From Piromyces finnis finn (taxonomy: Eukaryota > Fungi > Neocallimastigomycota), in contig MCFH01000077.1 of the NCBI GenBank assembly GCA_002104945.1, positions 1 through 64,000 on the forward strand: a DNA stretch of 64,000 nt, given 5' to 3'. Positions 3,770-33,326 of this stretch are shown piece after piece. The position numbers and the translations under genes were made by a program. The notes beneath the pieces were generated by a model, which was not told the DNA's origin, ran no database searches, and saw only the letters and a program-made list of their open reading frames with translations. Numbering within the stretch: the stretch's first letter is position 1; each line of letters opens with the position of its first letter.

Positions 3770-4396
3770 TGATACAATATTTTTATAAAGTAACATAAAA
3801 TAATATTTATTTGTTTTTAGGACTAAGCAAGTGGGAATAGTATAAAGTAATATATTCTAACAAAGAAAATTAACTAAGAATAATTTATTGTAAAATTATA
3901 ATAACACTAAAACTAGAATAATAATATTTGTTTTTTTTTATAATATATATATTTTTTTTTTAATCTTTATTTATTAATAAATATTTTAAGAGGTTTATAA
4001 GTAAAATTAAGAATAAGAATAAAATACTAAGATTTAATATCTTTAATAAAAATATAGAATTATTCAACTAAATAATAATTCTCTTCCAAAAAAAATAATA
4101 ATATAATAAAATAAAATAATCCTAAAAGTTTTACTTATTCTTTTTTTTTTTTTTATAACTTATTTTTATCTTTCCTAATTAACGTCTTTTTCTTTATAAT
4201 ATTTTTTTTTCTTTTTTTCTATATCTATTTCTATCAACTCCGCTATAATACTATTATTAATTATATTACATTGAATAAATTCTTGTACATATTTAATTAC
4301 ATTACTTAAATGTAAGAATTAAATTATTATTATAATTTAACCTATTTTCACCTATAATTTATTATTATTTCTTATTTTTATAGTAACAACGTATCA
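3770..4396 (-). repeat. 3' LTR of element A (627 bp)
   Basis: Termini TGATAC...GTATCA form a 6-bp inverted repeat. The first ~470 bp nearly match 10995..11461. The PPT abuts position 4396. Confidence 0.85.
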
Positions 4397-4410
4397 AGAC
4401 GCCCTCACTT
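4397..4410 (-). other. Polypurine tract of element A
   Basis: Minus strand reads AAGTGAGGGCGTCT immediately before TGATAC, similar to the PPT of element B (GGGAGGGCGT). Confidence 0.7.
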
Positions 4411-4642
4411 AGTCTAGACTTCGTCCCCTGAAGTCCAGCTTAGTGTTCTTGTCATAATACCTTGAATTAATATTAAAGTTATTTTATTATTTTTTTTTTT
4501 TTTTTTTTTTTTTATTATATTATATTATATTATATCATTTTATATTATATTATATTATATTATATTGTACTATTTATCTAAAAATGTCCTATAAATTATC
4601 TTAAAAATATAATTTAAATTTTTCTAATATTTTATATATAAA

Positions 4643-4686
<44 letters not shown>

Positions 4687-5078
4687 GTAAGTTAACTGAA
4701 TATTAATAACTATATAATTTATATATTATAATTTGATGTAACTATAATCTAATGATTATTATTATTATTATTTTTTTTATATATTCATATTCTTATATAT
4801 ATATATTTTTCTATTATTTTATTATTTATATATTTTTATATATTTATATATTTATTTATTCTTATGTTAATGAAATTTAAACAAACCATTGTTAAAATGT
4901 GATCTGAAATTTGAATTTGGAAATTTTAATTTGAAATTTGAATGGATTTCATCAGGATTAAAAAAATGATTTTCAGGATGTTGTGATTATATATATATTA
5001 TTTGTTCTATGTATTCTCATTCATATCTTCTTCTTCCGTACGTATTACCATTTTATTCTATTAATATTGAATTTTAAA

Positions 5079-5112
<34 letters not shown>

Positions 5113-5179
5113 TTTATTTATTTTATTATTATTATTATTATTATTATCATCATTATTTTTTTTTTTTTTTTTTTTTTAA

Positions 5180-8100
5180 TTATAATTCCTCGTCTAGATT
5201 AATTTCTGTTATATAAGGAATAACATTTTTTAAATGAATATTCCTTTCTGCAATTTCCTTTGTGATTGGATCACAAACGGTTACAGTATTTAATTCCCTT
5301 TTTACAATTTCTAAAGGTCCTGTAAAGAACGGGTCTAGTTTCCTCCTATTAAATACTTTTACAAGAATTAAGTCTCCAGGTTTGTAATCACTTTTCATTC
5401 TTTTAATTTGTTTACGGCGATCTTCCCATAGTCTATTTGCCGTTTCAATATTTTTTATAGCTTCTCTTATCCATTGATCATGAGTAATAAATTTCCGTAG
5501 CCAATATTCATCTTCATTTTCTAATTCATTCTTCTTTTCAATATTGATTGATAATTCGAAGGGTTGTAAATCTCTTCTTCCGTACAGTAGTTCAAAACTA
5601 CTGTGTTTCGTAACTTCACTTTTACATGTCCTTAAGGCCCAAAGTGCACTGTAAAGAGTTTCGTCCCATTCGTCATATTTTTCCCCTAATAGTCGTAAGT
5701 ATTTTCCTATTTCACGATTCCTATTTTCTACTTCACCATTAGATGCAGGGTGGTAAGTAGTAATGTAATGGACATAAACATCATGTAGGTCTAAGAAGGC
5801 TTTTGTTTTATCAGAAGTAAACTGCGGTCCGTTGTCCGTTACTAATATTTCAGGTATCCCATGTCTAGAAAAAACCTGTTTTAAGAATTTTATTACGTCT
5901 TCTGATTCAGCTGACTTTAAGGGTTCAGCTTCTACCCATTTAGTTAAGTAATCTACTAATACTATAATATATTTGTTTTTATTTTTTGTAATAGGTAGAG
6001 GACCTATTAAATCTAAGCCTACTCTTGAAAATGGATAACTGGGAGGGGTAGCAATATCTTCTGAATATTTGTTTAATGATTGAGGCCTACAGGTTTGACA
6101 TCTATGGCAACACTTAATATAATTTATTATATCACTTTTCATATTTTTCCAATAATAACATTTTTTTAATCTATTATAGGTTTTATAAACACCTTCATGA
6201 CCAATCTGATGAGCACCCTTTATTAAATTTGCTTTCAGGTTAGTATCATCAATAATTTTTCTTAATATATCTCCTTGCTTATAGTATTTTGCATCATCCA
6301 GCTCAATAATTCTTGTATTTATAAATTCTCTCATATAATTATTAAGACTATCATTATCATTAGTATTATAAGTTATATTAATTGTTTCATAATTATCATT
6401 ATTATTATCATTTTTAGAGTTTTCTCCTTCTTTTACTGTATCCAGTCTTGATAATGCGTCTGCAATCACGTTTTTTCTCCCTTCCTCAAATTGAACTTCC
6501 ACGTTCAATATACTTAATTCAGTTACCCATTTGAGATGGCGACTATTGGTAGGTTCCCTTTTTTTAAATATACTAACCAACGGTTTGTGGTCAGTAATAA
6601 CAGTAGTAACCATTGAGTTACCTGTTATAAAAGATTTAAACTTTTTTACACAGTGAAATACAGCTTTACCTTCCAAGTCGGTAATGCTGTAATTAGCTTC
6701 AGAAGTTGACAAGGACCTACTTTCGAAATAAAGGGGAAGTTCATCGTTATTCTCGTTCTTTTGCAATAATACACCGCCTAAACCATCTCTTGAGGCGTCT
6801 GTCCTGATAATGAAAGGTTTGGAATAGTCTGGGGAGGAAAGAATAGGAGCTACCATTAACCGGTTTTTTAATTCTTCAAAAGAAATAGTACAATCATCAG
6901 TCCAAATGAAAGGTACGTCTTTTTTTGGTAAATTAAATAAAGGTTTAGCTATCTGAGCAAATTTGTTAATAAATTTTCTATAATATCCAATAGCTCCGAG
7001 GAAGGATTTTAATTGTGTTACATTTTTCGGTGGGACCCAATTATTAATAACACGTATTTTATCTGGAATTGGTGAGATACCATCAATTGTAAGTATATGA
7101 CCTAGTAGTTCAACTTTTGTTTTAAAGAAATCACATTTTTCAATATTAATTTTTAATTTGTTATTTAATAAAATTTGAAAGACTTTAGAAAGATGATTTA
7201 TGTGGGATTCAACTGAATCTGAGAAAATAACTAAATCATCTATGTACACGAACATGCAGGATCCGATAAGGTCAAAAAATATCCTGTTCATTTCACGCTG
7301 AAATGTAGCAGGGGCGTTACATAATCCAAAAGGCATGACCTTGAAGTTGTAATTGCCAAACATCGTGGTGAAAGAAGTTTTGTCTTTATCCTTGGGATCC
7401 ATAGGGATTTGATGATATCCCGAAAATAAATCAATAGTGGAAAGAATTTTTGAATTTTTATTAATAAAAGTAAGTATCTCGTCAATTAAAGGTAATGCAT
7501 AAGAATCTTTTAATGTTATATTATTTAACTGACGATAATCAACACACATTCTCCATTTTCTATTCTTTTTAGAAACTAAAACCACAGGAGATGCCCAAGA
7601 AGAACTGGAAGGTTCAATCAATCGGTTTTTAATTAGCTTTGATAATTCACCTTTCAAAGCTTCCATTTGGGATTTAGAGAGTCTATAAGCACGTTGCTTA
7701 ATTGGTTGTGAATTTGGAATCAATTCAATTTTATGTGGAAATAAATTGGATCCACCTAAATCATCTGTACTAACAGCAATTACCTCCTTATACTTTTGGA
7801 ATAGTTCAACGGTTTCTGCTTTAACTTCAATCGGTACCGTATTAATTATATCATTGATTAAATTTTCTTTTAAATTCACATTATTACCATTATTAAAATT
7901 ATCTACCTTATTGACAGTGATCGTTAATAGATTAGGTTCCTCGCATTCAGTAGTATTCTCATTCACAGTGGAGGTTGGTTGGATATCGTAAGTGAGGTCT
8001 GCTAATTTCAAGTAATTTCCATTATCATCAATATGATATAAACAATCACTCACTAAATTAATATCAAATCTATTTCTTTTTAACGAATCTACACCAAGTA

Positions 8101-9595
8101 ATATATCAAATAGATCATCCTTCTCAATTACCCTAAAGTAGTCGTTGAAAGTAATATTACCAATGGAAATGTTTAAATCATAAATCTCAGTATCTATAAC
8201 AGAGTTTGAGTAAGCTTGAAATATCGTTTCCGAGATTCTTCCAACAGCTGGTTTGTTAATATTATATTTCTTTAGAGCGGTACGTGTAATAATATTTACA
8301 CTGGCACAAGTGTCCAGAAAAATATTACATGAAACTTCTTCAACTTTTCCTTTAACTTTAATTATTTTATTTTTACTTATTGCTGTCATTACGTTTGTAA
8401 TGGTATTTTTAGGTTGAAGTTTTAACGCTTTTAGAAATTCCGTTCTAAATTTCGGGAACAAGTCCAATAGGTAAGCTAACTTTGTCATTACTTCGGTTGA
8501 AGCAACTTCCTTAATTAAATCTTGTATATAATATTTTTCAAAATCTTCCATTAGGTTAATATGTCTTTCTTTCAGTTTCTCAGGTAATTCTTTTTGTACT
8601 AATTTTATTGAAGTATTATCACTATTTTTAGTAGAATTATTACTAACATTTACTCTTTCACTCATCTCTTTAAATTTCACTTGTTTATTTTTTTTCTTAA
8701 CATTATTTATATTTTTATTTGCAATTATGGAAGGATCTAAAAATTTTAATTTCTCTGTTTTATTAATATTTTCATCTTGTTTATTTAGATTTTTCTTTTC
8801 CTTTGCTATTCTCCTATTGTTTTGTGATTGATCGTTATCCACAAGGTAAGTTTTATTGAGAGATTCAATATCTGATTCTTCGCTTTGATTATAGTCTTCT
8901 TCTAATACCATGTCTTCATCTTCTTTCTCTACAGGTATTATTTTATCACTTTTTAATTTTTTATTACTATCTATTTTATTACTTAATTCACTTTCATTAA
9001 CACCATTTTTATTATGATTACTATTATTGTCTTCAATACGGGGATTTATATTTATACTACCAACGTCTACATTGCTTTTGACCTTGCTATTATTTGTAAT
9101 CTTGTTATTATTACTTACATTTTCATAATTGTCTGTATTTGGAAAATGGAGATCTGGCAACTTAGCATTATAATTCATTGCATCGGTCTGTATGGGCCTT
9201 GGATTATCTTTCAATTTTGATTTTAGTTTATCATTATGGTATGGATTACTTCTATTATTGTTATCCTTTTCTCTACGAGTAGCGACAGCCACCATTTCAG
9301 GAGAATCATTATTGAGATAACCAATTTCATTATTATAACCACTGTGTAATGTGCTTGTTTCTTGTATATATGTATTGTTGTAATTATTATTGAATAAATT
9401 ATCCTCAACATTTGTATTATCATAAATATTATCGTGTTTTTTATTATAATTATTTTGATCACCATTAACAATAGTCATCAAATTATTTTTATTATTGTTA
9501 TTATTATTATATTTCATATTGTTATTTATATTATTAGGGTGGATTATAGTGGTTTGATTAATGGAAGTTGTCCTTCTTCCATTTATTAGTTTAAA
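5180..9595 (-). CDS. pol: Pol polyprotein of element A (protease, RT, RNase H, integrase), entered by predicted -1 frameshift
   Basis: Motifs: FLDTCASVN (PR), YIDD (RT), TDASRDGLGGVL (RH), H-H-C-C and D-D-E with TDNGPQF (IN). The frame stays open upstream of ATG 9517 to the slippery site at 9589..9595. No chromodomain. Confidence 0.95.
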   Translation of the reverse strand, partial: FKLINGRRTTSINQTTIIHPNNINNNMKYNNNNNNKNNLMTIVNGDQNNYNKKHDNIYDNTNVEDNLFNNNYNNTYIQETSTLHSGYNNEIGYLNNDSPEMVAVATRREKDNNNRSNPYHNDKLKSKLKDNPRPIQTDAMNYNAKLPDLHFPNTDNYENVSNNNKITNNSKVKSNVDVGSININPRIEDNNSNHNKNGVNESELSNKIDSNKKLKSDKIIPVEKEDEDMVLEEDYNQSEESDIESLNKTYLVDNDQSQNNRRIAKEKKNLNKQDENINKTEKLKFLDPSIIANKNINNVKKKNKQVKFKEMSERVNVSNNSTKNSDNTSIKLVQKELPEKLKERHINLMEDFEKYYIQDLIKEVASTEVMTKLAYLLDLFPKFRTEFLKALKLQPKNTITNVMTAISKNKIIKVKGKVEEVSCNIFLDTCASVNIITRTALKKYNINKPAVGRISETIFQAYSNSVIDTEIYDLNISIGNITFNDYFRVIEKDDLFDILLGVDSLKRNRFDINLVSDCLYHIDDNGNYLKLADLTYDIQPTSTVNENTTECEEPNLLTITVNKVDNFNNGNNVNLKENLINDIINTVPIEVKAETVELFQKYKEVIAVSTDDLGGSNLFPHKIELIPNSQPIKQRAYRLSKSQMEALKGELSKLIKNRLIEPSSSSWASPVVLVSKKNRKWRMCVDYRQLNNITLKDSYALPLIDEILTFINKNSKILSTIDLFSGYHQIPMDPKDKDKTSFTTMFGNYNFKVMPFGLCNAPATFQREMNRIFFDLIGSCMFVYIDDLVIFSDSVESHINHLSKVFQILLNNKLKINIEKCDFFKTKVELLGHILTIDGISPIPDKIRVINNWVPPKNVTQLKSFLGAIGYYRKFINKFAQIAKPLFNLPKKDVPFIWTDDCTISFEELKNRLMVAPILSSPDYSKPFIIRTDASRDGLGGVLLQKNENNDELPLYFESRSLSTSEANYSITDLEGKAVFHCVKKFKSFITGNSMVTTVITDHKPLVSIFKKREPTNSRHLKWVTELSILNVEVQFEEGRKNVIADALSRLDTVKEGENSKNDNNNDNYETINITYNTNDNDSLNNYMREFINTRIIELDDAKYYKQGDILRKIIDDTNLKANLIKGAHQIGHEGVYKTYNRLKKCYYWKNMKSDIINYIKCCHRCQTCRPQSLNKYSEDIATPPSYPFSRVGLDLIGPLPITKNKNKYIIVLVDYLTKWVEAEPLKSAESEDVIKFLKQVFSRHGIPEILVTDNGPQFTSDKTKAFLDLHDVYVHYITTYHPASNGEVENRNREIGKYLRLLGEKYDEWDETLYSALWALRTCKSEVTKHSSFELLYGRRDLQPFELSINIEKKNELENEDEYWLRKFITHDQWIREAIKNIETANRLWEDRRKQIKRMKSDYKPGDLILVKVFNRRKLDPFFTGPLEIVKRELNTVTVCDPITKEIAERNIHLKNVIPYITEINLDEEL

Positions 9596-10686
9596 GGCTT
9601 CTTTAATAATCCTTTCTCTTCCATTTCAGCTAACTGTTTATAACTATATGGACAATTTGGCGATTTGTGCCCTACTTGGTTACATTTAAAACATGTAATA
9701 TTTTTATTTTCTCTATAGATTCTATTATCCTGATGATAGGTGTTATGATTGTTGTTATGGTTTTGATTACTATTATTATTAATAATGCTAGGATAAGCAT
9801 TATTTTCAATGTATGTATTCTGAGATTGGTTCCAATTTTTATAAGATGGTTTGTTTCTTGCCAGCATAACATTAGCTTGACCATACTTCATGTTATGATT
9901 AAAATTATTATTTCTTCTTTCATTGTTTTTAGCGTTATAATTCATTCCTCTGTTATTATTGTTTCCAAAGTTATTTTGAGGATAATTATTAATTTGTGAA
10001 TAGTCCATTAAGTTATTGTTTAAAGTATTTGGGTTTATATAATAAGGGGGAGTATTAAAATTTCCAAAGAACGGGTGACCTAAAAGAGGGTTATTGTACT
10101 GGTTATTAAAAGCTTGAGTAAGCATAACATTAGTTCCATTATTATTATTGCTAGAATTTGTTCCTGTAATTTCTCTTTCAGCTCCTTCGGCAATTTCAGC
10201 AACTTTATAAGCTTCATCTAAGGTAGAACATTGAGAGGTAATCACACTGGAACACGGATAGAATCTGGAATTAATTGCATTTGTATAATCTTTTACAGAG
10301 ATTAATTTTTTGAAATCCTCACTAAGATGGTTGTACATCTTTTTATGTCTACAATTAAATTTTCTTATAGTTTCACCCATATTAATCTTTATAGTTTTAA
10401 GGTTAGAGCATTTATCAGACTCTGTTATTTCTAACGAAGCTTCAATGGCTTTTTGAATTTCATGAAGACTTGGATAAATTTTCTTATTTCCTTCTTCTTT
10501 TACCAAGATATCTAAATCTCCATGAATTTCTTCTTCTACAGCTTCTTTCACCCAATTAAAAAGTTTTCTTGCATCTGTGATGTCATGCAAGTCCATAATT
10601 CTAGAAAAGTCAGACACCCAACTGTCGACATCTTTTCCATAATCTTCGAGAAGAGGAAGTACCCTTTGTAGTTTTGTAGCATCCAT
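9586..10686 (-). CDS. gag: Gag of element A
   Basis: 366-aa ORF upstream of pol with the zinc knuckle CFKCNQVGHKSPNC. Confidence 0.9.
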   Translation of the reverse strand: MDATKLQRVLPLLEDYGKDVDSWVSDFSRIMDLHDITDARKLFNWVKEAVEEEIHGDLDILVKEEGNKKIYPSLHEIQKAIEASLEITESDKCSNLKTIKINMGETIRKFNCRHKKMYNHLSEDFKKLISVKDYTNAINSRFYPCSSVITSQCSTLDEAYKVAEIAEGAEREITGTNSSNNNNGTNVMLTQAFNNQYNNPLLGHPFFGNFNTPPYYINPNTLNNNLMDYSQINNYPQNNFGNNNNRGMNYNAKNNERRNNNFNHNMKYGQANVMLARNKPSYKNWNQSQNTYIENNAYPSIINNNSNQNHNNNHNTYHQDNRIYRENKNITCFKCNQVGHKSPNCPYSYKQLAEMEEKGLLKKPLN

Positions 10687-10971
10687 TATATTATTATTTA
10701 ATTATTTACTTAAAATTATAAAATGTTTTAATTATGAGATTTGTTTTATAAAAAAAATGAATAAACTTAAATATAATAATTTATTTATTATTAAAAAAAA
10801 TTTTTTTTATATATATAATTATAAAAATATCTTAGTAATAAGAACTATCTTAATAAAAAAACGAATAAAACTAATATTAAAGTAATAATTTCTTTTATAT
10901 AATAAAAATAATAGTTAAAATTATTAATAATTATTCTTCTTTATTATTTTCATATTACTTTATCTTGCTTC

Positions 10972-10988
10972 GCCCGGATTCTCCACCA
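10972..10988 (-). other. tRNA primer-binding site of element A, probably tRNA-Ala
   Basis: Minus strand TGGTGGAGAATCCGGGC is the complement of a tRNA 3' end ...GCCCGGAUUCUCCACCA. It lies 6 nt inside the LTR edge. The Ala assignment is from recalled eukaryotic tRNA-Ala 3' ends. Confidence 0.7.
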
Positions 10989-10994
10989 AAATTA

Positions 10995-11461
10995 TGATAC
11001 AATATTTTTATAAAGTAACATAAAATAATATTTATTTGTTTTTAGGACTAAGCAAGTGGGAATAGTATAAAGTAATATATTCTAACAAAGAAAATTAACT
11101 AAGAATAATTTATTGTAAAATTATAATAACACTAAAACTAGAATAATAATATTTGTTTTTTTTTATAATATATTTTTTTTTTTAATCTTTATTTATTAAT
11201 AAATATTTTAAGAGGTTTATAAGTAAAATTAAGAATAAGAATAAAATACTAAGATTTAATATCTTTAATAAAAATATAGAATTATTCAACTAAATAATAA
11301 TTCTCTTCCAAAAAAAATAATAATATAATAAAATAAAATAATCCTAAAAGTTTTACTTATTCTTTTTTTTTTTTTATAACTTATTTTTATCTTTCCTAAT
11401 TAACGTCTTTTTCTTTATAATATTTTTTTTTCTTTTTTTCTATATCTATTTCTATCAACTC
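10995..11461 (-). repeat. Truncated 5' LTR of element A
   Basis: Matches 3770..4240 apart from small AT-run differences, then switches abruptly into the gag of element C. About 156 bp of U3 is missing. Confidence 0.85.
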
Positions 11462-14892: not shown

Positions 14893-16025
14893 TGTTAAGT
14901 TTTTGGGTTTGGTTATGCGGCCAGGTCAGAATGTTATTAATTATATAGTAAAAATGTTTTTTAAGAAATTAAATTTAATTATAAAATAACACCTTAAACT
15001 CCCAAATGAAAAATGAAAAATTTATATTTACTTTAAAATAACTTTTTATAAATTTTTTATTTATTTAATAATAATATAAATGATATTATAAGTAACTATA
15101 TAATTAAGATTATAACTATAATCTTTACAAAGAATTAAAATCGAATTCAATTCATTCTCTTTTATATTCTTTGTTCAGATTATTAAATTGATATTAATAA
15201 GAATAAAGTATTACATATAATATATTAGTAATATAATTAAATAAGTAATAAGATTGTTTGTTTGTTTGTTTGTTTGTTTGTCATGACATAAAATAAAATA
15301 AACATATGATTAATCATTTAAACAGTTGATCCTAATTAGTAATTATAAAAACTATTCAATTAATAATTCATCATTATTAATTGATATTACCATAACATAT
15401 TTGTTATAACTAAATAATTATTATTTTCAAAATTATTTCTAATAAAACTTGCCGTTAACCTATTTTATAATAATTAAGATTATTTAATTTATAGGTATTA
15501 ACTGTTACACCTAAATGGGTCTAGTTCTATTTTTAGTAACAATCGTTATCATTAATTAAATTAATATAACTAAAATTCCTATTGATATATTTTTAATTTC
15601 ATCAAGTCATAAGAAATATTTATGATCCATACTTGATATCATATTGATTTTAATTTACCTAATAAAATCTTTAAATGATCATAACTTCCTTAAATGATCA
15701 GTTAGAAGGACCGCGATTGTACCAAATTGTAGCTTTCTTCCTAAGCTTTCCAATAAACCTAGTTTCATCACCGTAGCACTTACAGCCGTAGCGATCGTTT
15801 TTGGCGAGTTACACCTTATTTCGTACTTGCTTATTTTTGGTTAAGGGTTATAGTATATTGATATTAAATTTTTGAAATCATAACCCTTTCACTGAATCAA
15901 AATTTAAAAGGTGACTTTTAAAAGTGTTTTAAAATAATTATTGAAATTATTTAATTATAATTATTATGTTTAATTAATTATAGATATTATCTGAATTTGT
16001 TTTAAATCCAGTTAATATCTTCACA
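14893..16025 (-). repeat. 3' LTR of element B
   Basis: TGTTAAG...CTTCACA, same length as 21302..22434 with no difference found by eye. PPT GGGAGGGCGT adjoins at 16026..16035. Confidence 0.95.
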
Positions 16026-16428
16026 ACGCCCTCCCTAGGAATTCGTATTCCAGACGAATTCTATGAACTGGAGCGAAAAGTAAAAATTTTTGATTTTTAA
16101 AAAAATTTTTTCGAGAGGAAGTAATAATTTCAAAAGGTCACTTGGCCATTGTGAGATTTTTGAAATTTCACTTTTTGAAAAATTTTCTTGTAGGTAAAAT
16201 TTTAATAATAAAATTGATACTGCAGATTTTGAATATGAAAATAAAAATAAAAAATAATAAAGTTTTAATATGATAATTGAAAAATATTCGGTGTAAAAAT
16301 TTTTGAAATGTTGAAATTTCAAAATTTTGTGATGAGTTAAATTTCGAAATTTAGTTGTTATAAAAATATTTTGTAAATGGTGTAAAAGTTATTTTAAGAG
16401 AATTATTGACTTATTAATATTATTTTAA

Positions 16429-19400
16429 TTAATTATATGCTATAGAAGCATAATGTCGTCCACTTTTTAAATATTTTTGATAAATGTATTGATTACGTGG
16501 ATTGTCTTCTACTTCACTTGCTGGTACCCAATTATAAGCGGAACGGTATTTGTATCGAATTTTATATTCATATCGTTGTTGTTTATAATTTGTACGGAAT
16601 CCAGATATTTCCACTATATCTTTTATTGATTCTGGATCCGCAGTTCTATTTAAAAATTCTTTTGGAGTTGATCTATAAGGTTCCAACTCAGATACATGAA
16701 ATATTGGATAGTGTTTGGGAAAAGGTGATTTTTTGATATCGATTTCATAATTGTTATTTCTCAAAACTTGAGTTATTTTATATGGACCATATTTACAAGG
16801 AGCTAATTTGGAACTATTTTCAATATTTAGAGAAGGTGGGGCTTGAATCCAAACTAAATCATCAATTTTAAATTTTGGAGCTTCTAAACGACTTTTATCC
16901 ACTCTTCTTTTATACAACTCTTTGGAGCGTAGTAACACTTCTTTTATGTGGTTGAATGCATCATTAACGTTTTGAACTAGTTTATGATTAATATTACATT
17001 GTGGTAATAGGGTCATTTCATCCATCGGAGGGTGGAAACCATAATTAATGAAGAATGGTGTTTCTTTGGTTGATTCATTAACAGCGTTGTTATAGGCGAA
17101 TTCTGCAAGTGGAAGCCAATCAACCCAGTCGTCATGATAGAAAGACTTGGAATAACATCTAAGATACTGTTCAATAAAAGAATTTGACCTCTCGACCTGT
17201 CCAACAGTTTCATGGTGGTCAGTAGTAGCTATTCTTGGATGAATATATAATAAATCCAAAAATTCGAGCCAAACATCACTTGTAGATTGTGAGCCTCTAT
17301 CAGTATATAGGTCATAAGGGAGACCATGTAAACGATATACATTGTTCAAAAAAGCTTTTGCAGTTTGTGCTGCGTTTGGAACTTGTTTAAACGGCACTAA
17401 GTGAATCATTTTAGAAAAGCGGTCAACCACTACCATAATTACGGTGTACCCTTTAGACTCAGGAAGGCCACAAAGAAAGTCAATTTCTATAGATTTCCAT
17501 GGACGTTCTGGAGTATCTAAAGGTTGTAATTTTCCATATTTCCGATGTCTAGTTACTTTATTTCTTGTGCATGTCTCACAAGAATTAACAAATTTAGTGA
17601 CATCATCCTTAATTTTAGGCCACCAAAAATTTCGAGTTATCAATTCTAAAGTCCTTTTTATACCAAGATGTCCAGCAGAGGGTTGTTCATGATATTTCAT
17701 AAGAACATCTAAACGTAGTTTCTCAGGGATATAAACTAAGTTATTATATAAAATAAGATTATTTTTTAATTCAAACTTGTTCATTTTCCTAAATGGTCTA
17801 TAAGCCTTTTGGTCATTATGTGGGCTGAAATATAGCATAATATCCTTAGCAGTTTCGTCGTCCTTTAAGTATTGAATAACTTGTTCCAAGAAGTTACTCA
17901 TAATACCAATGAAACTTGGTATTAGTTTTACATTTTTTGAGTCTAAAATATATTCTGGCTTTTCTTCATAAGTCCTATCCATGTAGTCAGGTCTGCGAGA
18001 TAGACAATCAGGTTTACCATTCTTACGACCTTGTCTGTATATAAGTTCAAAGTCGTATTCATGAAAGAAAAGGTGCCAACGATGTTGTCTTTGATTACCT
18101 ACCTTTCCTCCAAGAGTATAAAGTAAATTTCTATGATCAGTGTAAACTTTTATTTTATATTTAGCACCAAGAAGAAGGTGCCTCCAAGTAGAGAAAGAAT
18201 CCTTAATGGCTAATAGTTCTTTATCTGTTATAGAATAATTAACTTCAGAACTACTTAGACTTCTGGAGTAGTAAGCAACAGGATGTAGACGATTTTCTGA
18301 ATCATATTGAGAAAGTATAGAACCGATAGCAACATTACTTGCATCACATTCTAAAATATATTGTTTTTGAGGATCAGGATGTGATAAAATAGGTGCTGAA
18401 GTTAAACGCGTTTTTAAAATGTTAAATGAGGATTCACATTCTGTGGACCATTTGAACTTTGCATTCTTTTTTGTTAGGTTGTGGAGGGGTTTAGCCAAGT
18501 CTGCAAAATTCATTACAAAGCGTCTATAGTAGTTACAAAGACCTAAAAATCTTTGTACATCCTTAACTGTAGTAGGAATAGGCCAATTTTTGATTGACTC
18601 TATCTTTTTTGGGTCGGTAGCAATTCCTGAACCTGAAATAACATATCCTAAGAATTCAACTTGTGGTTTGTCAAATTCACATTTAGGAAGTTTAGCATAT
18701 AAATTATTTTCTAATAGTTTAGAAAGAACTTCACGTACATGTTGGTGGTGTTCTTCTAAGGTTTTTGAAAATATAAGAATATCATCCAAATAGAGAATAA
18801 CAGATTTTTCCAAGAAAGGTCTGAGAACAGAATTTATAAATGCCTGAAAAGTAGCAGGAGCGTTACGTAAACCAAATGGCATCACTAAATATTCATAGTG
18901 ACCAAACTTTGTGCGAAAAGCAGTTTTATATTCATCACCATTTCTTATTCTAACTAAATTATAAGCAGAGCGTAAGTCGAGCTTGGTGAAATACTTTGCA
19001 CCTTTGACACGTTCTATAATGTCGGTAATAAGTGGTATTGGGTAGGAGTTACGTATCGTTACAGAATTGAGTTTTTTATAATCAATACAAACTCTAAGAG
19101 TACCATCTTTCTTTTTCTGAAATACCACTGGATATCCTGCAGGTGATTCGGATGGTCTAATAAAGCCTTTTTCTAAATTTTCCTTGATATACTCTTCTAA
19201 AACTTTTGATTCTTCTTCTGATAAGGGATAGATGGGACCATAGTGAAGAGTAGCATCTTTTTCTAGTACTATTTTACAATCTGTAATTCTATGTGGTGGT
19301 AGTTTATCAGCTTCTTGTTTGCTGAAAACTTTTGCCAAATCTCGATAGGGTTTTGGAATATCCTCAATAGTATGTTCTTCTAAATTGCTTACTTCTTCTG

Positions 19401-20250
19401 GTTTTTCGGACAAAAAAGTATGAATTAAATAATTATAATTATATCTATCATAATTATTTTTATTTAATATAACTTTTCTAAAAAATTTGGAACGTTTAGG
19501 GTTAAATTTGTGAAATCGACCATTTTTCTTCTTACTAAAGGTTTTAGATCTGAAATAAAAATTATGAATTTTATTTTTTAAATTATAAAAATTGGTGGAA
19601 TAATTTTTATTTTTATTTTTTGTGTTATTTACACCTGTAGAAGTGGTAGGTGTAACATTTATGTCATTTCTATTATAAGAAATGAATTGTTCTAATTTTA
19701 AAAATTTAGTAGCATGCTTCATATTGAATTTCTTTCTGTTAAAATCATATTTTAAATTTGAATATAAATAATTTTTATTATAATTATAATGAATTTCATA
19801 TTTGGACATGAATATATTTCCAAATAATAAATCTGTCGGAATATAATCCGCTAGTAAAAATTTTTCTTTGAAATTGATGAAATGGAATTTATTGTTGATA
19901 AATAGTTTTAACTGAAAGTTTAGGTTGATATATTCATCAAGTTCAATTGAAGTACCACTGATACCTTGTACAGTGATAACATTATTAATTTTATGAGGAT
20001 GTAATTGTAATGTACGTAATAGTTTGTACGACATAAAATTACAATAAGATCCACTATCTAATAGTGATGTACATGCAATTTTATTATGTACATTATTTGT
20101 ACCTCCATTATTGGATAATACATATGTATTAAAAGTAAAAAACGTTGAAGGTAATGTATTATCTTTGTTGATAGTGGGAAAAGTGTAGTTTAATATTTTT
20201 GTATTCGAGTGGTGATGGGACTTCAATGGAAGTCCTTTATTTAGTTTTTT
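16429..20250 (-). CDS. pol: Pol of element B (PR-RT-RH-IN-chromodomain), entered by predicted -1 frameshift
   Basis: Motifs: LLDSGS (PR), YLDD (RT), ECDAS (RH), H-H-C-C and DDE integrase, GPY, and the chromo-like tail EYKIRYKYRSAYNWVP. The track start at 20226 is a TTG; the frame is open to the slippery site at 20244..20250. Confidence 0.95.
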   Translation of the reverse strand, partial: KKLNKGLPLKSHHHSNTKILNYTFPTINKDNTLPSTFFTFNTYVLSNNGGTNNVHNKIACTSLLDSGSYCNFMSYKLLRTLQLHPHKINNVITVQGISGTSIELDEYINLNFQLKLFINNKFHFINFKEKFLLADYIPTDLLFGNIFMSKYEIHYNYNKNYLYSNLKYDFNRKKFNMKHATKFLKLEQFISYNRNDINVTPTTSTGVNNTKNKNKNYSTNFYNLKNKIHNFYFRSKTFSKKKNGRFHKFNPKRSKFFRKVILNKNNYDRYNYNYLIHTFLSEKPEEVSNLEEHTIEDIPKPYRDLAKVFSKQEADKLPPHRITDCKIVLEKDATLHYGPIYPLSEEESKVLEEYIKENLEKGFIRPSESPAGYPVVFQKKKDGTLRVCIDYKKLNSVTIRNSYPIPLITDIIERVKGAKYFTKLDLRSAYNLVRIRNGDEYKTAFRTKFGHYEYLVMPFGLRNAPATFQAFINSVLRPFLEKSVILYLDDILIFSKTLEEHHQHVREVLSKLLENNLYAKLPKCEFDKPQVEFLGYVISGSGIATDPKKIESIKNWPIPTTVKDVQRFLGLCNYYRRFVMNFADLAKPLHNLTKKNAKFKWSTECESSFNILKTRLTSAPILSHPDPQKQYILECDASNVAIGSILSQYDSENRLHPVAYYSRSLSSSEVNYSITDKELLAIKDSFSTWRHLLLGAKYKIKVYTDHRNLLYTLGGKVGNQRQHRWHLFFHEYDFELIYRQGRKNGKPDCLSRRPDYMDRTYEEKPEYILDSKNVKLIPSFIGIMSNFLEQVIQYLKDDETAKDIMLYFSPHNDQKAYRPFRKMNKFELKNNLILYNNLVYIPEKLRLDVLMKYHEQPSAGHLGIKRTLELITRNFWWPKIKDDVTKFVNSCETCTRNKVTRHRKYGKLQPLDTPERPWKSIEIDFLCGLPESKGYTVIMVVVDRFSKMIHLVPFKQVPNAAQTAKAFLNNVYRLHGLPYDLYTDRGSQSTSDVWLEFLDLLYIHPRIATTDHHETVGQVERSNSFIEQYLRCYSKSFYHDDWVDWLPLAEFAYNNAVNESTKETPFFINYGFHPPMDEMTLLPQCNINHKLVQNVNDAFNHIKEVLLRSKELYKRRVDKSRLEAPKFKIDDLVWIQAPPSLNIENSSKLAPCKYGPYKITQVLRNNNYEIDIKKSPFPKHYPIFHVSELEPYRSTPKEFLNRTADPESIKDIVEISGFRTNYKQQRYEYKIRYKYRSAYNWVPASEVEDNPRNQYIYQKYLKSGRHYASIAYN

Positions 20251-21266
20251 GAACTAATTTTTTGAGCTTTATAATTGTTGTTATTGTAATTATTATTATA
20301 TTTTTGGAAGTTATTGTTGTTATTGTTGTTGTTGTTGTTGTATGATCTGTGGTGGTTGAAATGTGAATTTCTTTTCTTGTTAGATTTAGAGTTGGAAGAC
20401 TGGTTAATCTTATTCTTTGTAGAAAGAGAACTTTCGATCAAAATACATCTAGTTATAATGGACTCCATGGTGGTTGGAAATACCTCCATCTTTTCAATTT
20501 CTTCCTGATATTTGGGATGTAAACCATTATAAAAGATTAAAGATAATGCTTCTTCATTCCATTTAAATTGTTGTGAAAGAGAGCGGAATTCCTCGATATA
20601 ATCATTTATTTTACCATATTGTTGTTTTAAACGCATTATTTTGATTTTAGCTATCTTGTAACTAGCAACATTTGAGAAAGCAATTCTTAGTCCATCCAAC
20701 AATTCTTGCATGGTAGATGGATAAATATTATCCTTGTACTTGGCAAGATACCAATTTCTAGCAGCATCACGAAGACGGGATTGTACAAAATTAATTTTTG
20801 TTTCTTCTGGTAAAGTTCGATTTGGTAGAGTTTTGAAAGTATCTTCACATAATTGACAAAACAAATCGGTATCACTAGTCTTACCGGAGAACATACCTGG
20901 ATCTGGCACTTGAGTGATTGGAGTAGCAAAACGGCCTCTCATGATAACATCATGATCCAAATCAAATCTTGTTGAAGTAGATTCATCATCTCTAAAGACA
21001 GTAGGTCTTGGAGTAGCTATCCTATCATAATTGGTATGTAACAATGGTTGTTCATCTTCATTCTGAGCAGTTTGATTATTATTCATATTGGTTAATACAC
21101 TCATGATTTCATTTAAACGATTATTCACATCATTGGAAAAATTTTGAAAATCTTCACGGAAAACCAAATTTTCATTGATACCCTCAATGATATCCTTGGC
21201 AGTCTGAGTAGCATCCTCTCTTAGTTGGTTTACCTCGTCTGGGAAATTAGGAACCGGAGTGAACAT
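20241..21266 (-). CDS. gag: Gag of element B (sushi/Tf-like capsid, no CCHC knuckle)
   Basis: 341 aa with the capsid-like stretch PDPGMFSG...KINFVQSRLRDAARNWY...FYNGL. Confidence 0.9.
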   Translation of the reverse strand: MFTPVPNFPDEVNQLREDATQTAKDIIEGINENLVFREDFQNFSNDVNNRLNEIMSVLTNMNNNQTAQNEDEQPLLHTNYDRIATPRPTVFRDDESTSTRFDLDHDVIMRGRFATPITQVPDPGMFSGKTSDTDLFCQLCEDTFKTLPNRTLPEETKINFVQSRLRDAARNWYLAKYKDNIYPSTMQELLDGLRIAFSNVASYKIAKIKIMRLKQQYGKINDYIEEFRSLSQQFKWNEEALSLIFYNGLHPKYQEEIEKMEVFPTTMESIITRCILIESSLSTKNKINQSSNSKSNKKRNSHFNHHRSYNNNNNNNNNNFQKYNNNYNNNNYKAQKISSKN

Positions 21267-21290
21267 TCTAAAGTAGCCACTAAACAGCGG

Positions 21291-21301
21291 GTAAAGATTA
21301 T
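21291..21301 (-). other. Self-priming-type primer-binding site of element B
   Basis: Minus strand ATAATCTTTAC directly follows the 5' LTR, has no TGG, and is the exact complement of 11 nt inside the LTR (21527..21537). Confidence 0.8.
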
Positions 21302-22434
21302 TGTTAAGTTTTTGGGTTTGGTTATGCGGCCAGGTCAGAATGTTATTAATTATATAGTAAAAATGTTTTTTAAGAAATTAAATTTAATTATAAAATAACA
21401 CCTTAAACTCCCAAATGAAAAATGAAAAATTTATATTTACTTTAAAATAACTTTTTATAAATTTTTTATTTATTTAATAATAATATAAATGATATTATAA
21501 GTAACTATATAATTAAGATTATAACTATAATCTTTACAAAGAATTAAAATCGAATTCAATTCATTCTCTTTTATATTCTTTGTTCAGATTATTAAATTGA
21601 TATTAATAAGAATAAAGTATTACATATAATATATTAGTAATATAATTAAATAAGTAATAAGATTGTTTGTTTGTTTGTTTGTTTGTTTGTCATGACATAA
21701 AATAAAATAAACATATGATTAATCATTTAAACAGTTGATCCTAATTAGTAATTATAAAAACTATTCAATTAATAATTCATCATTATTAATTGATATTACC
21801 ATAACATATTTGTTATAACTAAATAATTATTATTTTCAAAATTATTTCTAATAAAACTTGCCGTTAACCTATTTTATAATAATTAAGATTATTTAATTTA
21901 TAGGTATTAACTGTTACACCTAAATGGGTCTAGTTCTATTTTTAGTAACAATCGTTATCATTAATTAAATTAATATAACTAAAATTCCTATTGATATATT
22001 TTTAATTTCATCAAGTCATAAGAAATATTTATGATCCATACTTGATATCATATTGATTTTAATTTACCTAATAAAATCTTTAAATGATCATAACTTCCTT
22101 AAATGATCAGTTAGAAGGACCGCGATTGTACCAAATTGTAGCTTTCTTCCTAAGCTTTCCAATAAACCTAGTTTCATCACCGTAGCACTTACAGCCGTAG
22201 CGATCGTTTTTGGCGAGTTACACCTTATTTCGTACTTGCTTATTTTTGGTTAAGGGTTATAGTATATTGATATTAAATTTTTGAAATCATAACCCTTTCA
22301 CTGAATCAAAATTTAAAAGGTGACTTTTAAAAGTGTTTTAAAATAATTATTGAAATTATTTAATTATAATTATTATGTTTAATTAATTATAGATATTATC
22401 TGAATTTGTTTTAAATCCAGTTAATATCTTCACA
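21302..22434 (-). repeat. 5' LTR of element B
   Basis: Direct repeat of 14893..16025. Confidence 0.95.
21569..21575 (-). promoter_or_regulatory. Candidate TATA box of the element B LTR promoter
   Basis: TATAAAA on the minus strand, 32 nt upstream of the start predicted from self-priming (21537). In AT-rich DNA the motif alone is weak evidence. Confidence 0.5.
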
Positions 22435-22503
22435 TAACAGAAGAAGTAGTTAAAAAGTTGTAATATAACTACCAATCCGTTATCATTTATTATGAAATTT
22501 GAA

Positions 22504-22585
22504 GTCACTTTGGCGGAGTGGTTAACGCGGTGGCCTGCTAAGCCATTTCCCTTTGGGAGCGCAGGTTCGAGTCCTGCAGGTGACG
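22504..22585 (+). tRNA. tRNA-Ser(GCT), intronless, 82 nt
   Basis: Acceptor stem GTCACTT/AGGTGAC, anticodon arm GTGGC-CTGCTAA-GCCAT, long variable arm, T arm GCAGG-TTCGAGT-CCTGC, followed by a T-run. Confidence 0.97.
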
Positions 22586-25729: not shown

Positions 25730-26716
25730 TCAAAAAAAAAAAAATATTATTTGTCTGTTCTTTTTAATGTTCTAACAAAATTATATAAATTAATTATTTA
25801 CTTCAAATGTTCTAATTTTTTCAACAATTTATATTTTATCTCAAAAACCAGTATATATTTTTTATAAACTTTCCTATAAGCTTTCTAACAAAATTTCTAT
25901 TAGTTGTGTTTTAATTTAAAAAAAGCTAAAAAGTTTGGTGATTAGTATGATACATGAATCAAAAATATAAAATACATTATGTATATTTCAATAGATAAAT
26001 GTATACATTCCATGTAATGTAATTGTAATTAAAAATAAAAAATTTATAGAATTTTTGATCAAAAAAAAAAAATATTATTTGTCTGTTCTTTTTAATGTTC
26101 TAACAAAATTATATAAATTAATTATTTACTTCAAATGTTCTAATTTTTTCAACAATTTATATTTTATCTCAAAAACCAGTATATATTTTTTATAAACTTT
26201 CCTATAAGCTTTCTAACAAAATTTCTATTAGTTGTGTTTTAATTTAAAAAAAGCTAAAAAGTTTGGTGATTAGTATGATACATGAATCAAAAATATAAAA
26301 TACATTATGTATATTTCAATAGATAAATGTATACATTCCATGTAATGTAATTGTAATTAAAAATAAAAAATTTATAGAATTTTTGATCAAAAAAAAAAAA
26401 TATTATTTGTCTGTTCTTTTTAATGTTCTAACAAAATTATATAAATTAATTATTTACTTCAAATGTTCTAATTTTTTCAACAATTTATATTTTATCTCAA
26501 AAACCAGTATATATTTTTTATAAACTTTCCTATAAGCTTTCTAACAAAATTTCTATTAGTTGTGTTTTAATTTAAAAAAAGCTAAAAAGTTTGGTGATTA
26601 GTATGATACATGAATCAAAAATATAAAATACATTATGTATATTTCAATAGATAAATGTATACATTCCATGTAATGTAATTGTAATTAAAAATAAAAAATT
26701 TATAGAATTTTTGATC
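25730..26716. repeat. 328-bp tandem repeat, 3 copies
   Basis: TATTATTTGTCTGTTC starts at 25745, 26073 and 26401. The copies look identical. Confidence 0.95.
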
Positions 26717-26986: not shown

Positions 26987-28075
26987 ATGTTTAATAAAAC
27001 TATTTTAACATTTTTATTTATTATCATTTATTTTCAGTTTGCTAGTGCTAATGAACTAAATGAGGTATTAAGTAAAAAAGAAGTATTAAATATTACCAAT
27101 GAGTTTTTTATCAGTTATTATTGTAAAGATGATATTTGTGTTAAAACAGATAATGAATATAAGGAAAAGTTTGTTGAAATTCCAGATAAAAATGAAAGGG
27201 TAATAAAATATATTGTTGATACCTGTTCTTCTGAAGAAATTATAAATGGTAGATGTTTTAGTGAAAAATGTATTTCTGATGCTCATTGTTTATCTAATAA
27301 ATGTATTGATAGTCATTGTGCTTTTAATGAGGAAACACCAATTGTACATTGTGATGATATTTATATTGGAGTAAAAAAATCATATATGCATTGTGGTAAA
27401 CCATATGGTGATACATGTAAAACTGATGATGAATGTTCTTCTAAAAAATGTGGTTTATATGATGGATTATGTAGAATGCAAGCTGAAGGTCCTCACGATG
27501 ATGAAGTATTTAGTAAAGAAGAAGTATTAAAAATTACTAGTAACAATTACATAAGTTATTATTGTAAGAATGATACTTGTGTTTCATATGATGATTATTA
27601 TCATGTTTATTTTGTTGATATTCCAGATGAAAATAATAATTTTAAAAGATATATTGTTGATACCTGTACTGTTGATGATATTAAAAATGGTAGATGTTAT
27701 CATGAAGAATGTACTTCTGATTCACAATGCTTATCTAATAAATGTATTGATAAACATTGTGCATTTAATGAAGAAACACCGATTGATCATTGTGAATATA
27801 TAGATTCATATATGCATTGTGGAAAACCACATGATGATACATGTAAAACTAATGATGAATGTTCTTCTAAAATTTGCAATAAATATGGAATATGTGATAT
27901 ACAAAAGAAAGGTTCTGATAGTGATTATATTGAAGCATTAAAAATTATCTTTTTCCTTATACCTTTATGCACAGTATATTTTATTATATTTTTGAATTTT
28001 TATTTTGTTTTCCGTAATACATACGAAAAGCATTCAAAAAATAGAAAAAATAAAAAGGATGCTTTAATTATTTAA
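26987..28075 (+). CDS. Cys-rich type I membrane/secreted protein with two tandem ~150-aa domains
   Basis: Signal peptide; duplicated EV(L/F)SK(K/E)EVL...SYYCK...YIVDTC...CLSNKCID.HCAFNEETP...SYMHCGKP..DTCKT.DECSSK.C; C-terminal TM and basic tail. Confidence 0.9.
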   Translation: MFNKTILTFLFIIIYFQFASANELNEVLSKKEVLNITNEFFISYYCKDDICVKTDNEYKEKFVEIPDKNERVIKYIVDTCSSEEIINGRCFSEKCISDAHCLSNKCIDSHCAFNEETPIVHCDDIYIGVKKSYMHCGKPYGDTCKTDDECSSKKCGLYDGLCRMQAEGPHDDEVFSKEEVLKITSNNYISYYCKNDTCVSYDDYYHVYFVDIPDENNNFKRYIVDTCTVDDIKNGRCYHEECTSDSQCLSNKCIDKHCAFNEETPIDHCEYIDSYMHCGKPHDDTCKTNDECSSKICNKYGICDIQKKGSDSDYIEALKIIFFLIPLCTVYFIIFLNFYFVFRNTYEKHSKNRKNKKDALII

Positions 28076-28788: not shown

Positions 28789-30154
28789 CTAATAATATAG
28801 CATAGTTTGTTGCATTGGCATTGAATAATACATTGGTATATTTTGGTTTTCATTATTTTGATATTGATTTGATTCATATGAAAATAAAGTCATATTTATT
28901 TCATTATTATTCGGAACCATTAAAGTTCCGTTCATATCGGTATTTGGAATAATTGAGGATAAAGAAGAATAAATATCGTTACTTTGGATTACTGGGGATA
29001 AGGAAGAATAGGAGGATATTGGAGAGAGGTTAGATTGAGAGAGATTAGATTCAGAATTCATTATTTGACCATTAGGATAATTATTAATCAAAAAAAATTG
29101 TTCATTATATTCAAACTGATCATCTATTTTATATTGATTTAATTCAATAGTTTCATTTCCATTAAAAGTATCATCATTAGAAGGTATAACTAATAATTGC
29201 GATGGCATTTCAGGGGTATATAATGAATCTTTTGGTGAAAATAGATAACTATTATTAACCAAATTTTGATTGTGATCATCAAATGAACCTATTTTTTTGA
29301 TCGTTGATGGTTTTAATTGATTTTTCTTCATTTTTTTTGAATGTTCTTGAATAGTCATTTCAATTTTATTCATAATGGATTCTTCATAATGGCATACATA
29401 GGAATATTTCTTATCTTTACAAAGTTCATTCCAAGTTCTAGCAACTAAAGTACTTGTAATCAAATCAACATTATCATTGATTTTCTTAAGAACCATTCCC
29501 CACAAAAGCTTCATTTGTTGAGGGGTTTTAGCGTATTTATTTAAAGATCTGCATAAACGTTCATAATCTTTAATTTTTTAAAAATATTTAAATAAAATAG
29601 TTATATAATTAATATTTATTTTTATTTAAATATTAAATATATATATAATATTAAACCATAAAATAATATTTATTCAATATATATACTTGGTTGAATTTTA
29701 AATTCTTCAAGTTGATCAATAATTTTTGCACAAAGTAAATAACGATAGGCTTGAGTCCTACCATTGATTATTCAAAAATAATAAAATTCATTAATATGAT
29801 TTTTATAATTTTTATAATAAATAATAATAATAGTAATAATTTTTTATTTAAACATACTTTGAAATATTCCATTTTGATTTTATAAATTCATCAATGGTTT
29901 GACTTTGTTTAATATATTCTTTAGAATTTAAGGATTGTTGGATATCTTTTATGTATCTTTTAAATTCTTCTTGTTTTAAAAGATAAACATTAAGTGGACT
30001 AAATTTCGGTTTAAAAGTGAATATTATATAAGTTAGAAATGTAATTTAAAACTTGATAATTTTTTATAATATAATAACTATAAAAGTAATAGTAATTAAA
30101 ATTAGTAAAAAAGATATATTTTACTTACTTTTCTAAAAAGCTAATATCAGCCAT
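28789..30154 (-). CDS. 4-exon gene, paralog 2 of the HTH-like family, about 338 aa; exons 30154-30129, 29998-29858, 29757-29687, 29567-28789
   Basis: Spliced frame MADISFLENPLNVYLLKQEEF...KSKWNISKTQAYRYLLCAK...PNYERLCRSL; same exon sizes as paralog 1. Confidence 0.85.
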
Positions 30155-32106: not shown

Positions 32107-33326
32107 TTAATAATAGATTATAGAGGTTTGATAGAATTGAATATTTTGCTTTTCATATTGATTAGGTATAACATTATTTTGAATTAATGGGGATATTGGA
32201 GATATTGGAGTAACAGAAGAAGAAGAAAATGTTGGTAAAAAGTTGTTATTTATTTGATTTTTAGCAATATTATTATATAATAAATATTGTTCATGACTTT
32301 CATAACAATCATCTTCTATTCCATATTGATTCATTTTAAGATTTTCATCATCATAAACATAATCATTTGAAGGAATAATTACGAATTGAGATGAAATTTC
32401 AGGTGTTTGATATGAAATATTGGATGAAGATATATAATCATGATTAACAAAATTTTGACTTGGAATTGCATAGGAATACTTATAATTATTATTATTGGAG
32501 GTTTTTAATTGATTATGTATCATTTTTTTTGAATGTTCTTGAAAAGTTAATTCAATTTTATTCATGATAGATTCTTCATAATAACATATATGGGAATATT
32601 TTTTATCTTTACAGAGTTCATTCCAAGTTCTAGAAACTAAAGTACTCGTGATTAAATCAACATTATCATTTATTTTTAAAAGTACCATTCTCCATAAAAG
32701 TTTTATTTGCTGAGGAGTTTTAGCATATTTATTTAAAGATCTACATAAACGTTCATAATCTTTAATTATTAAAAATAAATATTAGTTATTTATTTTATAA
32801 ATTATTTAAAATAATAAAATAATGTCTTATCAATATAACATACTTGGTTGGATTTTAAATTCCTTTAATTGATCAATAATTTTGGCACTAAGTAAATAAC
32901 GATAAGCTTGGGTTCTACAATCAAAATTTAAAATTTATATTAAAAATATAAATTTTATTAATATTTAAATTTATATAATATATATAATATTTTTTTAAAT
33001 ATTTTTAAATTAGTAAACAAGTAATACAATACTTTGAAATATTCCATTTAGATTTTACAAATTCATCAATAGTATAACCTTGTTTAAGATATTCCTTAGA
33101 ATTTAAACTTTGTTGGATATCTTTAACAAACTTTTTAAATTCTTCTTGTTTTAAAAGATAATTGTTAAGTGGACTAAAAATAATATTTTTTAAAATATAT
33201 ATTATTAATATTATTATTATTCTGTTTTTTTTGTTTTTTTTTTTTTTTTTGGTTAAAAATAAAATATAAATATTTAAGTAATGATGCTTTTAATAGTTAC
33301 TTTTCTAAAGTTGTTATATCAGTCAT
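32107..33326 (-). CDS. 4-exon gene, paralog 3 of the HTH-like family, about 296 aa; exons 33326-33301, 33173-33033, 32914-32844, 32759-32107
   Basis: Spliced frame MTDITTLENPLNNYLLKQEEF...KSKWNISKTQAYRYLLSAK...PNYERLCRSL; same exon sizes and phases as the other two. Confidence 0.85.

Follow-up and report, generated by a model that had tools for sequence, protein, structure and literature searches.

The stretch of DNA analysed here (the window) comprises 64,000 nucleotides of contig MCFH01000077.1 from the anaerobic gut fungus Piromyces finnis, and its minus strand carries a complete 7542-bp Ty3/gypsy retrotransposon with long terminal repeats (LTRs), which we term element B (14893..22434; all positions given for this element are read on the minus strand). 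A first-pass annotation had proposed that element B starts reverse transcription without a tRNA, by folding the 5′ end of its own RNA onto the primer-binding site (PBS) as the Schizosaccharomyces pombe element Tf1 does, and this core claim is now supported by the co-variation of primer and PBS across nine element families and by that of a flanking stem. The element consists of an LTR pair, a target-site duplication, a polypurine tract, a PBS, gag and pol. The 5′ LTR (21302..22434; 1133 bp, TG...CA) is 100% identical to the 3′ LTR (14893..16025; 1133 bp), and because of this identity and of the TGTTA duplications at 22439->22435 (the upstream copy) and 14892->14888, base 21302 can be taken as the last base of the 5′ LTR. 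The polypurine tract AGGGAGGGCG (16027..16036) lies one base before the 3′ LTR. The gag open reading frame (ORF; 20241..21266) encodes 341 aa with a Retrotrans_gag domain, and the pol frame (16429..20253), which is −1 relative to gag, encodes reverse transcriptase, RNase H, the zinc and core domains of integrase, a Tf2-type SH3 domain and, in addition, a short tail that resembles a chromodomain.

The PBS of element B, ATAATCTTTAC, occupies 21301->21291, begins with the first base after the 5′ LTR and contains no TGG. It finds an 11/11 complement at one single LTR site, the putative self-primer GTAAAGATTAT at 21537->21527, and the complementarity is exactly 11 nt long, since the flanking bases mismatch on both sides. 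A TATA box, TATAAAA, lies at 21575->21569, which makes G21537 the 32nd base after the box, and this G is directly preceded by a conserved CTTT (21538..21541), the likely start-site positions −4 to −1. The first-pass annotation had placed PBS, complement and TATA box at these positions, and its coordinates are exact to the base. Because of the TATA spacing and the point at which the complementarity begins, we place the border between the U3 and R parts of the LTR at 21538/21537; provided that transcription starts at G21537, U3 would extend from 22434 to 21538, and R-U5 would comprise the 236 nt from 21537 to 21302. The primer 11-mer occurs three times in the window (the two LTR copies and the PBS complement), compared to 0.25 occurrences expected from shuffled sequences. 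When control 10-mers from leader and gag were searched for their reverse complement in the upstream LTR, about 1% had one (11/1050), compared to the real PBS in all seven families that were put through this comparison.

Strong comparative evidence comes from nine families. Three of them, B, C and D, belong to the P. finnis genome, and the other six, E to J, were obtained from gut metagenomes or a different assembly; the pol sequences of these families are 48-75% identical to that of B. Families C and D were found by a genome search with the pol of B (68-71% identical), and several copies of each were taken, while the six relatives E to J came from a protein word search of gut metagenomes and other assemblies and were taken with their flanks. 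Family D, with an LTR of 1034 bp, has the same primer and PBS as B, although the rest of its LTR aligns poorly with that of B. Family C has an LTR of ~640 bp, and its primer GTGAGATTAT and PBS ATAATCTCAC differ from those of B by one substitution and a one-base deletion, both of which are compensated on the two sides. The other pairs are GTAAGGTTAT with PBS ATAACCTTAC in family E (pol 67% identical to B), GTAAGATTAT with ATAATCTTAC in families F and G (72% and 59%, respectively), GATGAGATTAT with ATAATCTCATC in family H (63%), GAAAAGATTAT with ATAATCTTTTC in family I (60%), and AGAATAAGATTAT with ATAATCTTATTCT in family J (48%). There are thus seven distinct primer/PBS pairs among the nine families, every one of them perfectly complementary over 10-13 nt, and the compensated changes include substitutions as well as a 1-nt indel. 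Compensatory changes between PBS and R in related families, to which the first-pass annotation had pointed as a check of its proposal, are therefore present. The arrangement around the pair recurs: each of the nine families has its PBS next to the ...CA terminus of the LTR, and each has a primer that starts 31-35 nt past the end of a TATAAA hexamer. CTTT immediately precedes the primer in eight families, and family I has CTTC there. The complementarity ends exactly at this CTT[T/C]/primer junction in eight of the nine families, as expected if the RNA begins with the junction base.

Further candidates were encountered beside these families. In a more distant, GC-richer chromovirus from a JGI metagenome (L059, 6600-8230), whose pol is 43% identical and in which Pfam clearly recognises a chromodomain, 12 nt of the PBS region TTGTCGAGACTG, which lies 2 nt past the end of the LTR, match a site that follows TATAAATA at a distance of 23 nt and that doubles as the 3′ arm of a perfect 13-bp hairpin located where transcription is predicted to start. 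The match shows that L059 apparently follows the same self-complementarity principle as the nine families. The 7-kb metagenome contig with family H opens with a fragment of another LTR (L056:18-70) that carries a B/D-type start, TATAAAAA...CTTTGTAAAGATTATTG, which suggests nested or adjacent insertions of two putatively self-priming families in another gut-fungal genome. Paired AGTAAAGATTATA matches that lie 6-9 kb apart in the P. finnis genome hint at additional candidate families.

The co-variation extends to a stem that is predicted to enclose the PBS. The first-pass annotation had described a second helix in which CATTCTGA-cc-TGGCC of U5 (21342->21328) pairs with GGCTA-ct-TTAGAATG of the leader (21278->21264), and this helix is indeed part of the unconstrained minimum-energy fold, where it is extended to 10+7 bp between a U5 arm, AACAUUCUGA-CC-UGGCC (21328..21344), and a leader arm, GGCUA-CU-UUAGAAUGUU (21262..21278), the latter containing the gag AUG (21266-21264). 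For a survey of this structure, 175 nt around each PBS were folded with the PBS kept unpaired, and the pairs were taken from the per-family folds. A common two-helix architecture was predicted in eight of the nine families. Its outer helix (6-11 bp) and inner helix (5-8 bp) are separated by a 2x2 internal loop made up of pyrimidines (CC/CC, CC/CU or CU/CC), and the PBS lies in the large loop; in most families, the leader strand of the inner helix begins ~10-13 nt past the PBS. The exception is family F, in which a U5 hairpin stands right before the PBS. In six families, the 3′ strand of the outer helix contains the gag AUG, which is at +17 past the PBS in family J and at +25/+26 in the other five. 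As computed, two-sided changes occur at 11 of 12 aligned pair positions, with family B mis-registered in that alignment, and when B is placed by hand, two of the 11 co-varying positions derive from the most distant family J alone. Examples of the compensations are C-G/U-A/A-U at one position and G-C/A-U/C-G at another. The stem and the primer:PBS duplex cross, and together they would therefore form a pseudoknot.

We estimate a probability of about 80% that element B primes its minus-strand cDNA with its own RNA, as Tf1 of S. pombe does. Transcription would begin at G21537, 32 nt past the TATA box and right after the conserved CTTT, and nucleotides 1-11 of the transcript (GUAAAGAUUAU) would fold back over ~236 nt onto the PBS (AUAAUCUUUAC) directly past U5. 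The U5-leader stem, with its outer helix that holds the gag AUG, its 2x2 pyrimidine loop and its inner helix, would enclose the PBS and present it in a loop, and the PBS would be bound while in this loop, as it would be bound by a tRNA in a retrovirus. The element's own RNase H would then cut after nucleotide 11, and the freed 3′-OH, positioned next to the last U5 base, would be extended through U5 and R. The data show the complementarity, its position and its co-variation as well as the predicted stem with its co-variation, and we infer from them where transcription starts, the cleavage by RNase H and the act of priming.

Some of our data weigh against self-priming or limit its support. The minimum-energy fold of the B leader favours a local 5′ hairpin that sequesters the primer, and the conformer in which the 5′ end pairs with the PBS lies 0.8 kcal/mol above this minimum; in families C and D, the unconstrained folds of the whole leader from the predicted first base do pair the 5′ end with the PBS. 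Three of the 19 B copies whose 5′ LTR was examined carry GTAAAGACTAT, which introduces an A.C mismatch while the PBS is unchanged. These three copies are older, and two of them may represent one duplicated locus, so that either 10 of 11 pairs are enough or the copies mutated after insertion. Public data from four runs that contain the element and were presumed to be RNA yielded, over 20900-22560, contigs only; these have flank-LTR and polypurine tract-LTR junctions, and are therefore taken as DNA-like, and they show a coverage hole at ~21475-21720, which adjoins a (CAAA)n repeat, so that no start site is readable. Exact-pattern scans for metagenome contigs that begin at the predicted R start, carried out with family B and then with family F, found none. 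Finally, the host tRNAs were sampled by an Rfam search in which 63 of ~2900 candidates were scored, plus 12 distinct tRNAs from fetched loci.

The least improbable alternative is that the R:PBS complementarity is real and selected, that it serves another role of the RNA, such as cyclisation, dimerisation, packaging or a translation switch, and that the minus-strand primer is something else. The burial of the gag AUG in the U5-leader stem and the recurrence of the primer-sequestering 5′ hairpin in seven of the nine families suggest regulatory conformers, and both observations speak for such a role. The hairpin was surveyed in the first 45 nt of R (21493-21537 in element B, and loci L046, L051, L053, L055 and L056), where the primer can pair with a nearby PBS-like decoy (ATAATCT...). 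In element B, it consists of GTAAAGATTAT-AGTT-ATAATCTT, and family H has a 10-bp hairpin; the hairpin energies lie ~1.5-3.7 standard deviations below those of mononucleotide shuffles. This hairpin may be a primer-sequestering conformer. One can go further and imagine the leader as a three-state RNA switch that is conserved across the gut-fungal families and partitions transcripts between translation and self-primed reverse transcription, an idea that we regard as speculative and rather unlikely. In the first state, the 5′ hairpin would hide the primer by pairing it with the decoy; in the second, the U5-leader stem would bury the gag AUG and display the PBS; and in the third, the primer:PBS duplex would form in a pseudoknot with the stem. 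To our knowledge, such a three-conformer arrangement has not been described for Tf1-type elements. As a replacement for self-priming, another role of the RNA is improbable, as the complementary site always lies at the first base past the LTR, which is where a minus-strand primer must end to regenerate U5. We also looked for an alternative PBS, with TGG or of any other type, between the LTR and gag, and none is present, and the same arrangement has been experimentally proven to prime in Tf1 (PMC7175516).

Even less probable is a priming by a host tRNA, a tRNA fragment or another small RNA with the sequence GUAAAGAUUAU, to which the LTR copy would be incidental. Half-tRNA primers are known for some copia elements (PMC6317226), and the partial sampling of the host tRNA set leaves room for such a primer. 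However, a PBS that matches a conserved host RNA should stay constant, and the PBS of these elements follows, in its seven versions, the changes of the element's own LTR, which counts against a tRNA primer. The PBS also has no TGG, and the 11-mer is under-represented outside the elements, with 87 sites genome-wide compared to 223 for a control word; these 87 sites do not coincide with any of the 63 scored tRNA genes. When 12 distinct host tRNAs with added CCA were compared with the PBS region, the best complement comprised 6-8 nt, with at most 6 nt of the PBS itself covered. The expectation of the first-pass annotation that no host tRNA would match the PBS thus holds for the 12 tRNAs of this incomplete sample. 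A chance complementarity, for which one could argue that very AT-rich LTRs hold many short inverted matches and that control 10-mers from inside LTRs find a complement in 0-13% of cases, is effectively refuted by the nine-family comparison and the control 10-mers, as only ~0.002 matches are expected per 1133-nt LTR strand and the match, with its changes compensated, recurs in all nine families at the same position relative to the promoter.

The coding region of element B agrees with its assignment to the Ty3/gypsy group. Pfam recognises RVT_1, RT_RNaseH, Integrase_H2C2, rve and SH3_Tf2-1 in pol, in the order reverse transcriptase, RNase H, integrase, and among proteins of solved structure, the yeast Ty3 Gag-Pol polyprotein is the closest relative (E 1e-134). 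The nearest named homologues of pol are from fish and frog (41-43%), followed by plant and algal sequences (36-38%), and the exact gag protein of element B has no record in the assembly collection. The pol frame opens just 13 nt before the end of gag, and the slippery heptamer A_AAA_AAC (20244..20250) directly precedes the gag stop codon (20243-20241). All nine families have such a heptamer, A_AAA_AAC/T, in phase at the gag end, always with pol in the −1 frame; it stands immediately before the gag stop codon, with the exception of family J, where it lies 33 nt before it. The −1 frameshift, which was also part of the first-pass annotation, is therefore well supported as the predicted route to Pol. 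The chromodomain that had been assigned to element B is a weaker case. Its pol tail gave no match to the Pfam Chromo domain even at E 10, and a profile of 17 tail sequences had four chromodomains of cpSRP43 (chloroplast SRP43) as its top PDB matches, at weak E values of 0.008-0.4. The tail consensus, ...IVEIxDFRTNYKxKRYEYKVRYKYRxxxNWVPASxIExDPRYQ..., reads like a chromodomain, and more distant pol relatives (43-50% identity) carry PF00385. A chromodomain in element B is thus weakly supported by these sequence comparisons. The annotation had further proposed that the mechanism extends to an early-diverging zoosporic fungus, combined with −1 frameshifting and a chromodomain; the co-variation and the frameshift heptamers speak for the first two parts of this combination, and the chromodomain is its weak part.

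A search of the genome (56.46 Mb, 232 contigs) revealed at least 13 further copies of element B with intact pol, 99-100% identical, and showed the LTR/PBS region to be present at least 40 times, with 94-100% identity. Because of these intact, near-identical copies, we regard the B family as very young and as probably active. In element B, the outer edge of the 5′ LTR lies 69 nt upstream of a divergently oriented tRNA-Ser(GCU) gene (22504..22585, plus strand), and such a position recurs in the family: seven separate loci have the outer edge of the 5′ LTR 66-69 nt upstream of where a divergent tRNA gene has its 5′ end, the genes being those of tRNA-Ser, Arg, Cys, Gly and Trp (observed in the window and at L001, L002, L006, L009, L015, L024, L029 and L032). 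One copy of family C lies 65 nt upstream of a tRNA-Cys gene.

The window contains a second, unrelated LTR retrotransposon, element A (~3763-11461, minus strand), with LTRs of ~474-478 bp that do not start with TG and with ORFs at 5180-9517 and 9586-10686. Element A has a PBS of the classical tRNA type, TGGTGGAGAATCCGGGCG (~10988->10971, minus strand), and together with the predicted self-priming of element B, both priming modes would therefore coexist in this genome. Elsewhere in the window, three exact tandem copies of a 328-bp unit (25733-26688, plus strand) are followed by an adjoining diverged internal repeat of ~430-440 bp, 79-87% identical, at 27060-27887 (plus strand) inside an ORF at 26987-28075, and a dispersed repeat family has three copies with 77-87% identity at 1712-2498, 29263-30003 and 32455-33178.

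Our analysis extends the sequence-level evidence for tRNA-independent self-priming to the anaerobic gut fungi (Neocallimastigomycota), which are early-diverging and very AT-rich, and it provides an unusually clean co-variation series with seven compensated primer/PBS versions. A literature search found no published PBS, primer or priming analysis for retrotransposons of the Neocallimastigomycota. The families combine predicted self-priming with −1 frameshifting and insertion ~66 bp upstream of tRNA genes. As they are very young, with identical LTRs and many intact copies, they could serve as natural material for studies of primer choice, and genetic tools might for the same reason be built on them in organisms that are now without such tools.

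The closest experimentally characterised system is Tf1, for which self-priming has been demonstrated, with 11 nt of the RNA serving as primer and RNase H cutting between the 11th and the 12th base (PMC7175516). Element B resembles Tf1 and Tf2 in its 11-nt PBS past the 5′ LTR, which is complementary to nucleotides 1-11 of its own predicted mRNA, in needing no tRNA according to this prediction, and in the structure around the PBS (PMC7175516). The elements also share the Ty3/gypsy affiliation and the Tf2-type SH3 domain in integrase. They differ in several respects: the LTR of B is much longer (1133 bp, with an R-U5 of ~236 nt), its accessory structure is a U5-leader stem that encloses PBS and gag AUG, and it inserts ~66-69 bp upstream of tRNA genes and not at RNA polymerase II promoters. 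Tf1 has a single gag-pol ORF, whereas B has separate gag and pol frames that are joined by a −1 slippery site. Retroviruses such as Rous sarcoma virus also bracket their PBS by a U5-leader helix that presents it in a loop, but the retroviral loop binds a tRNA, whereas the loop of B would bind the 5′ end of the RNA itself, and the outer helix of B additionally holds the gag start codon. A further relative in terms of organisation is Tj1 from Schizosaccharomyces japonicus; self-priming is likewise predicted there from LTR/PBS complementarity, Gag and Pol are not encoded by one simple ORF, and integration occurs upstream of genes transcribed by RNA polymerase III (PMC4600332). Pol of Tj1 is reached via the gag stop codon and not by a −1 frameshift as in B, and most Tj1 inserts are reported to lie within ~12 bp of tRNA genes, which is much closer than in B (PMC4600332); the host of Tj1, moreover, is an ascomycete yeast. 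The elements of the Tcn1 clade (Cryptococcus Tcn1, BatDenTy3-1 and moss Tcn1-like elements) and the vertebrate sushi elements are chromoviruses that have been proposed to prime themselves on the basis of their sequences (PMC7175516, PMC6317226), and they differ from B in that the chromodomain of B is barely recognisable. Taken together, the literature lists Tf2, Tj1, vertebrate sushi, Cryptococcus Tcn1, the plant Tcn1 clade and TAR copia as predicted self-primers (PMC4600332, PMC6317226, PMC7175516), and it regards this mode of priming as a general property of the Tf1/sushi group, whose hosts range from fungi to vertebrates, and of the Tcn1 clade (PMC4600332, PMC6317226), to which the chytrid element BatDenTy3-1 of Batrachochytrium belongs (PMC2864245). 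The mechanism is therefore not new, and with a chytrid element already in the Tcn1 clade, the novelty of the present case is smaller than the first-pass annotation had implied. The sequence comparison supports an assignment of element B to the Tf1/sushi type of self-priming by mechanism, and the nine families of gut-fungal elements support the view of self-priming as an ancestral and general feature of the Tf1/sushi/Tcn1 branch among Ty3/gypsy retrotransposons.

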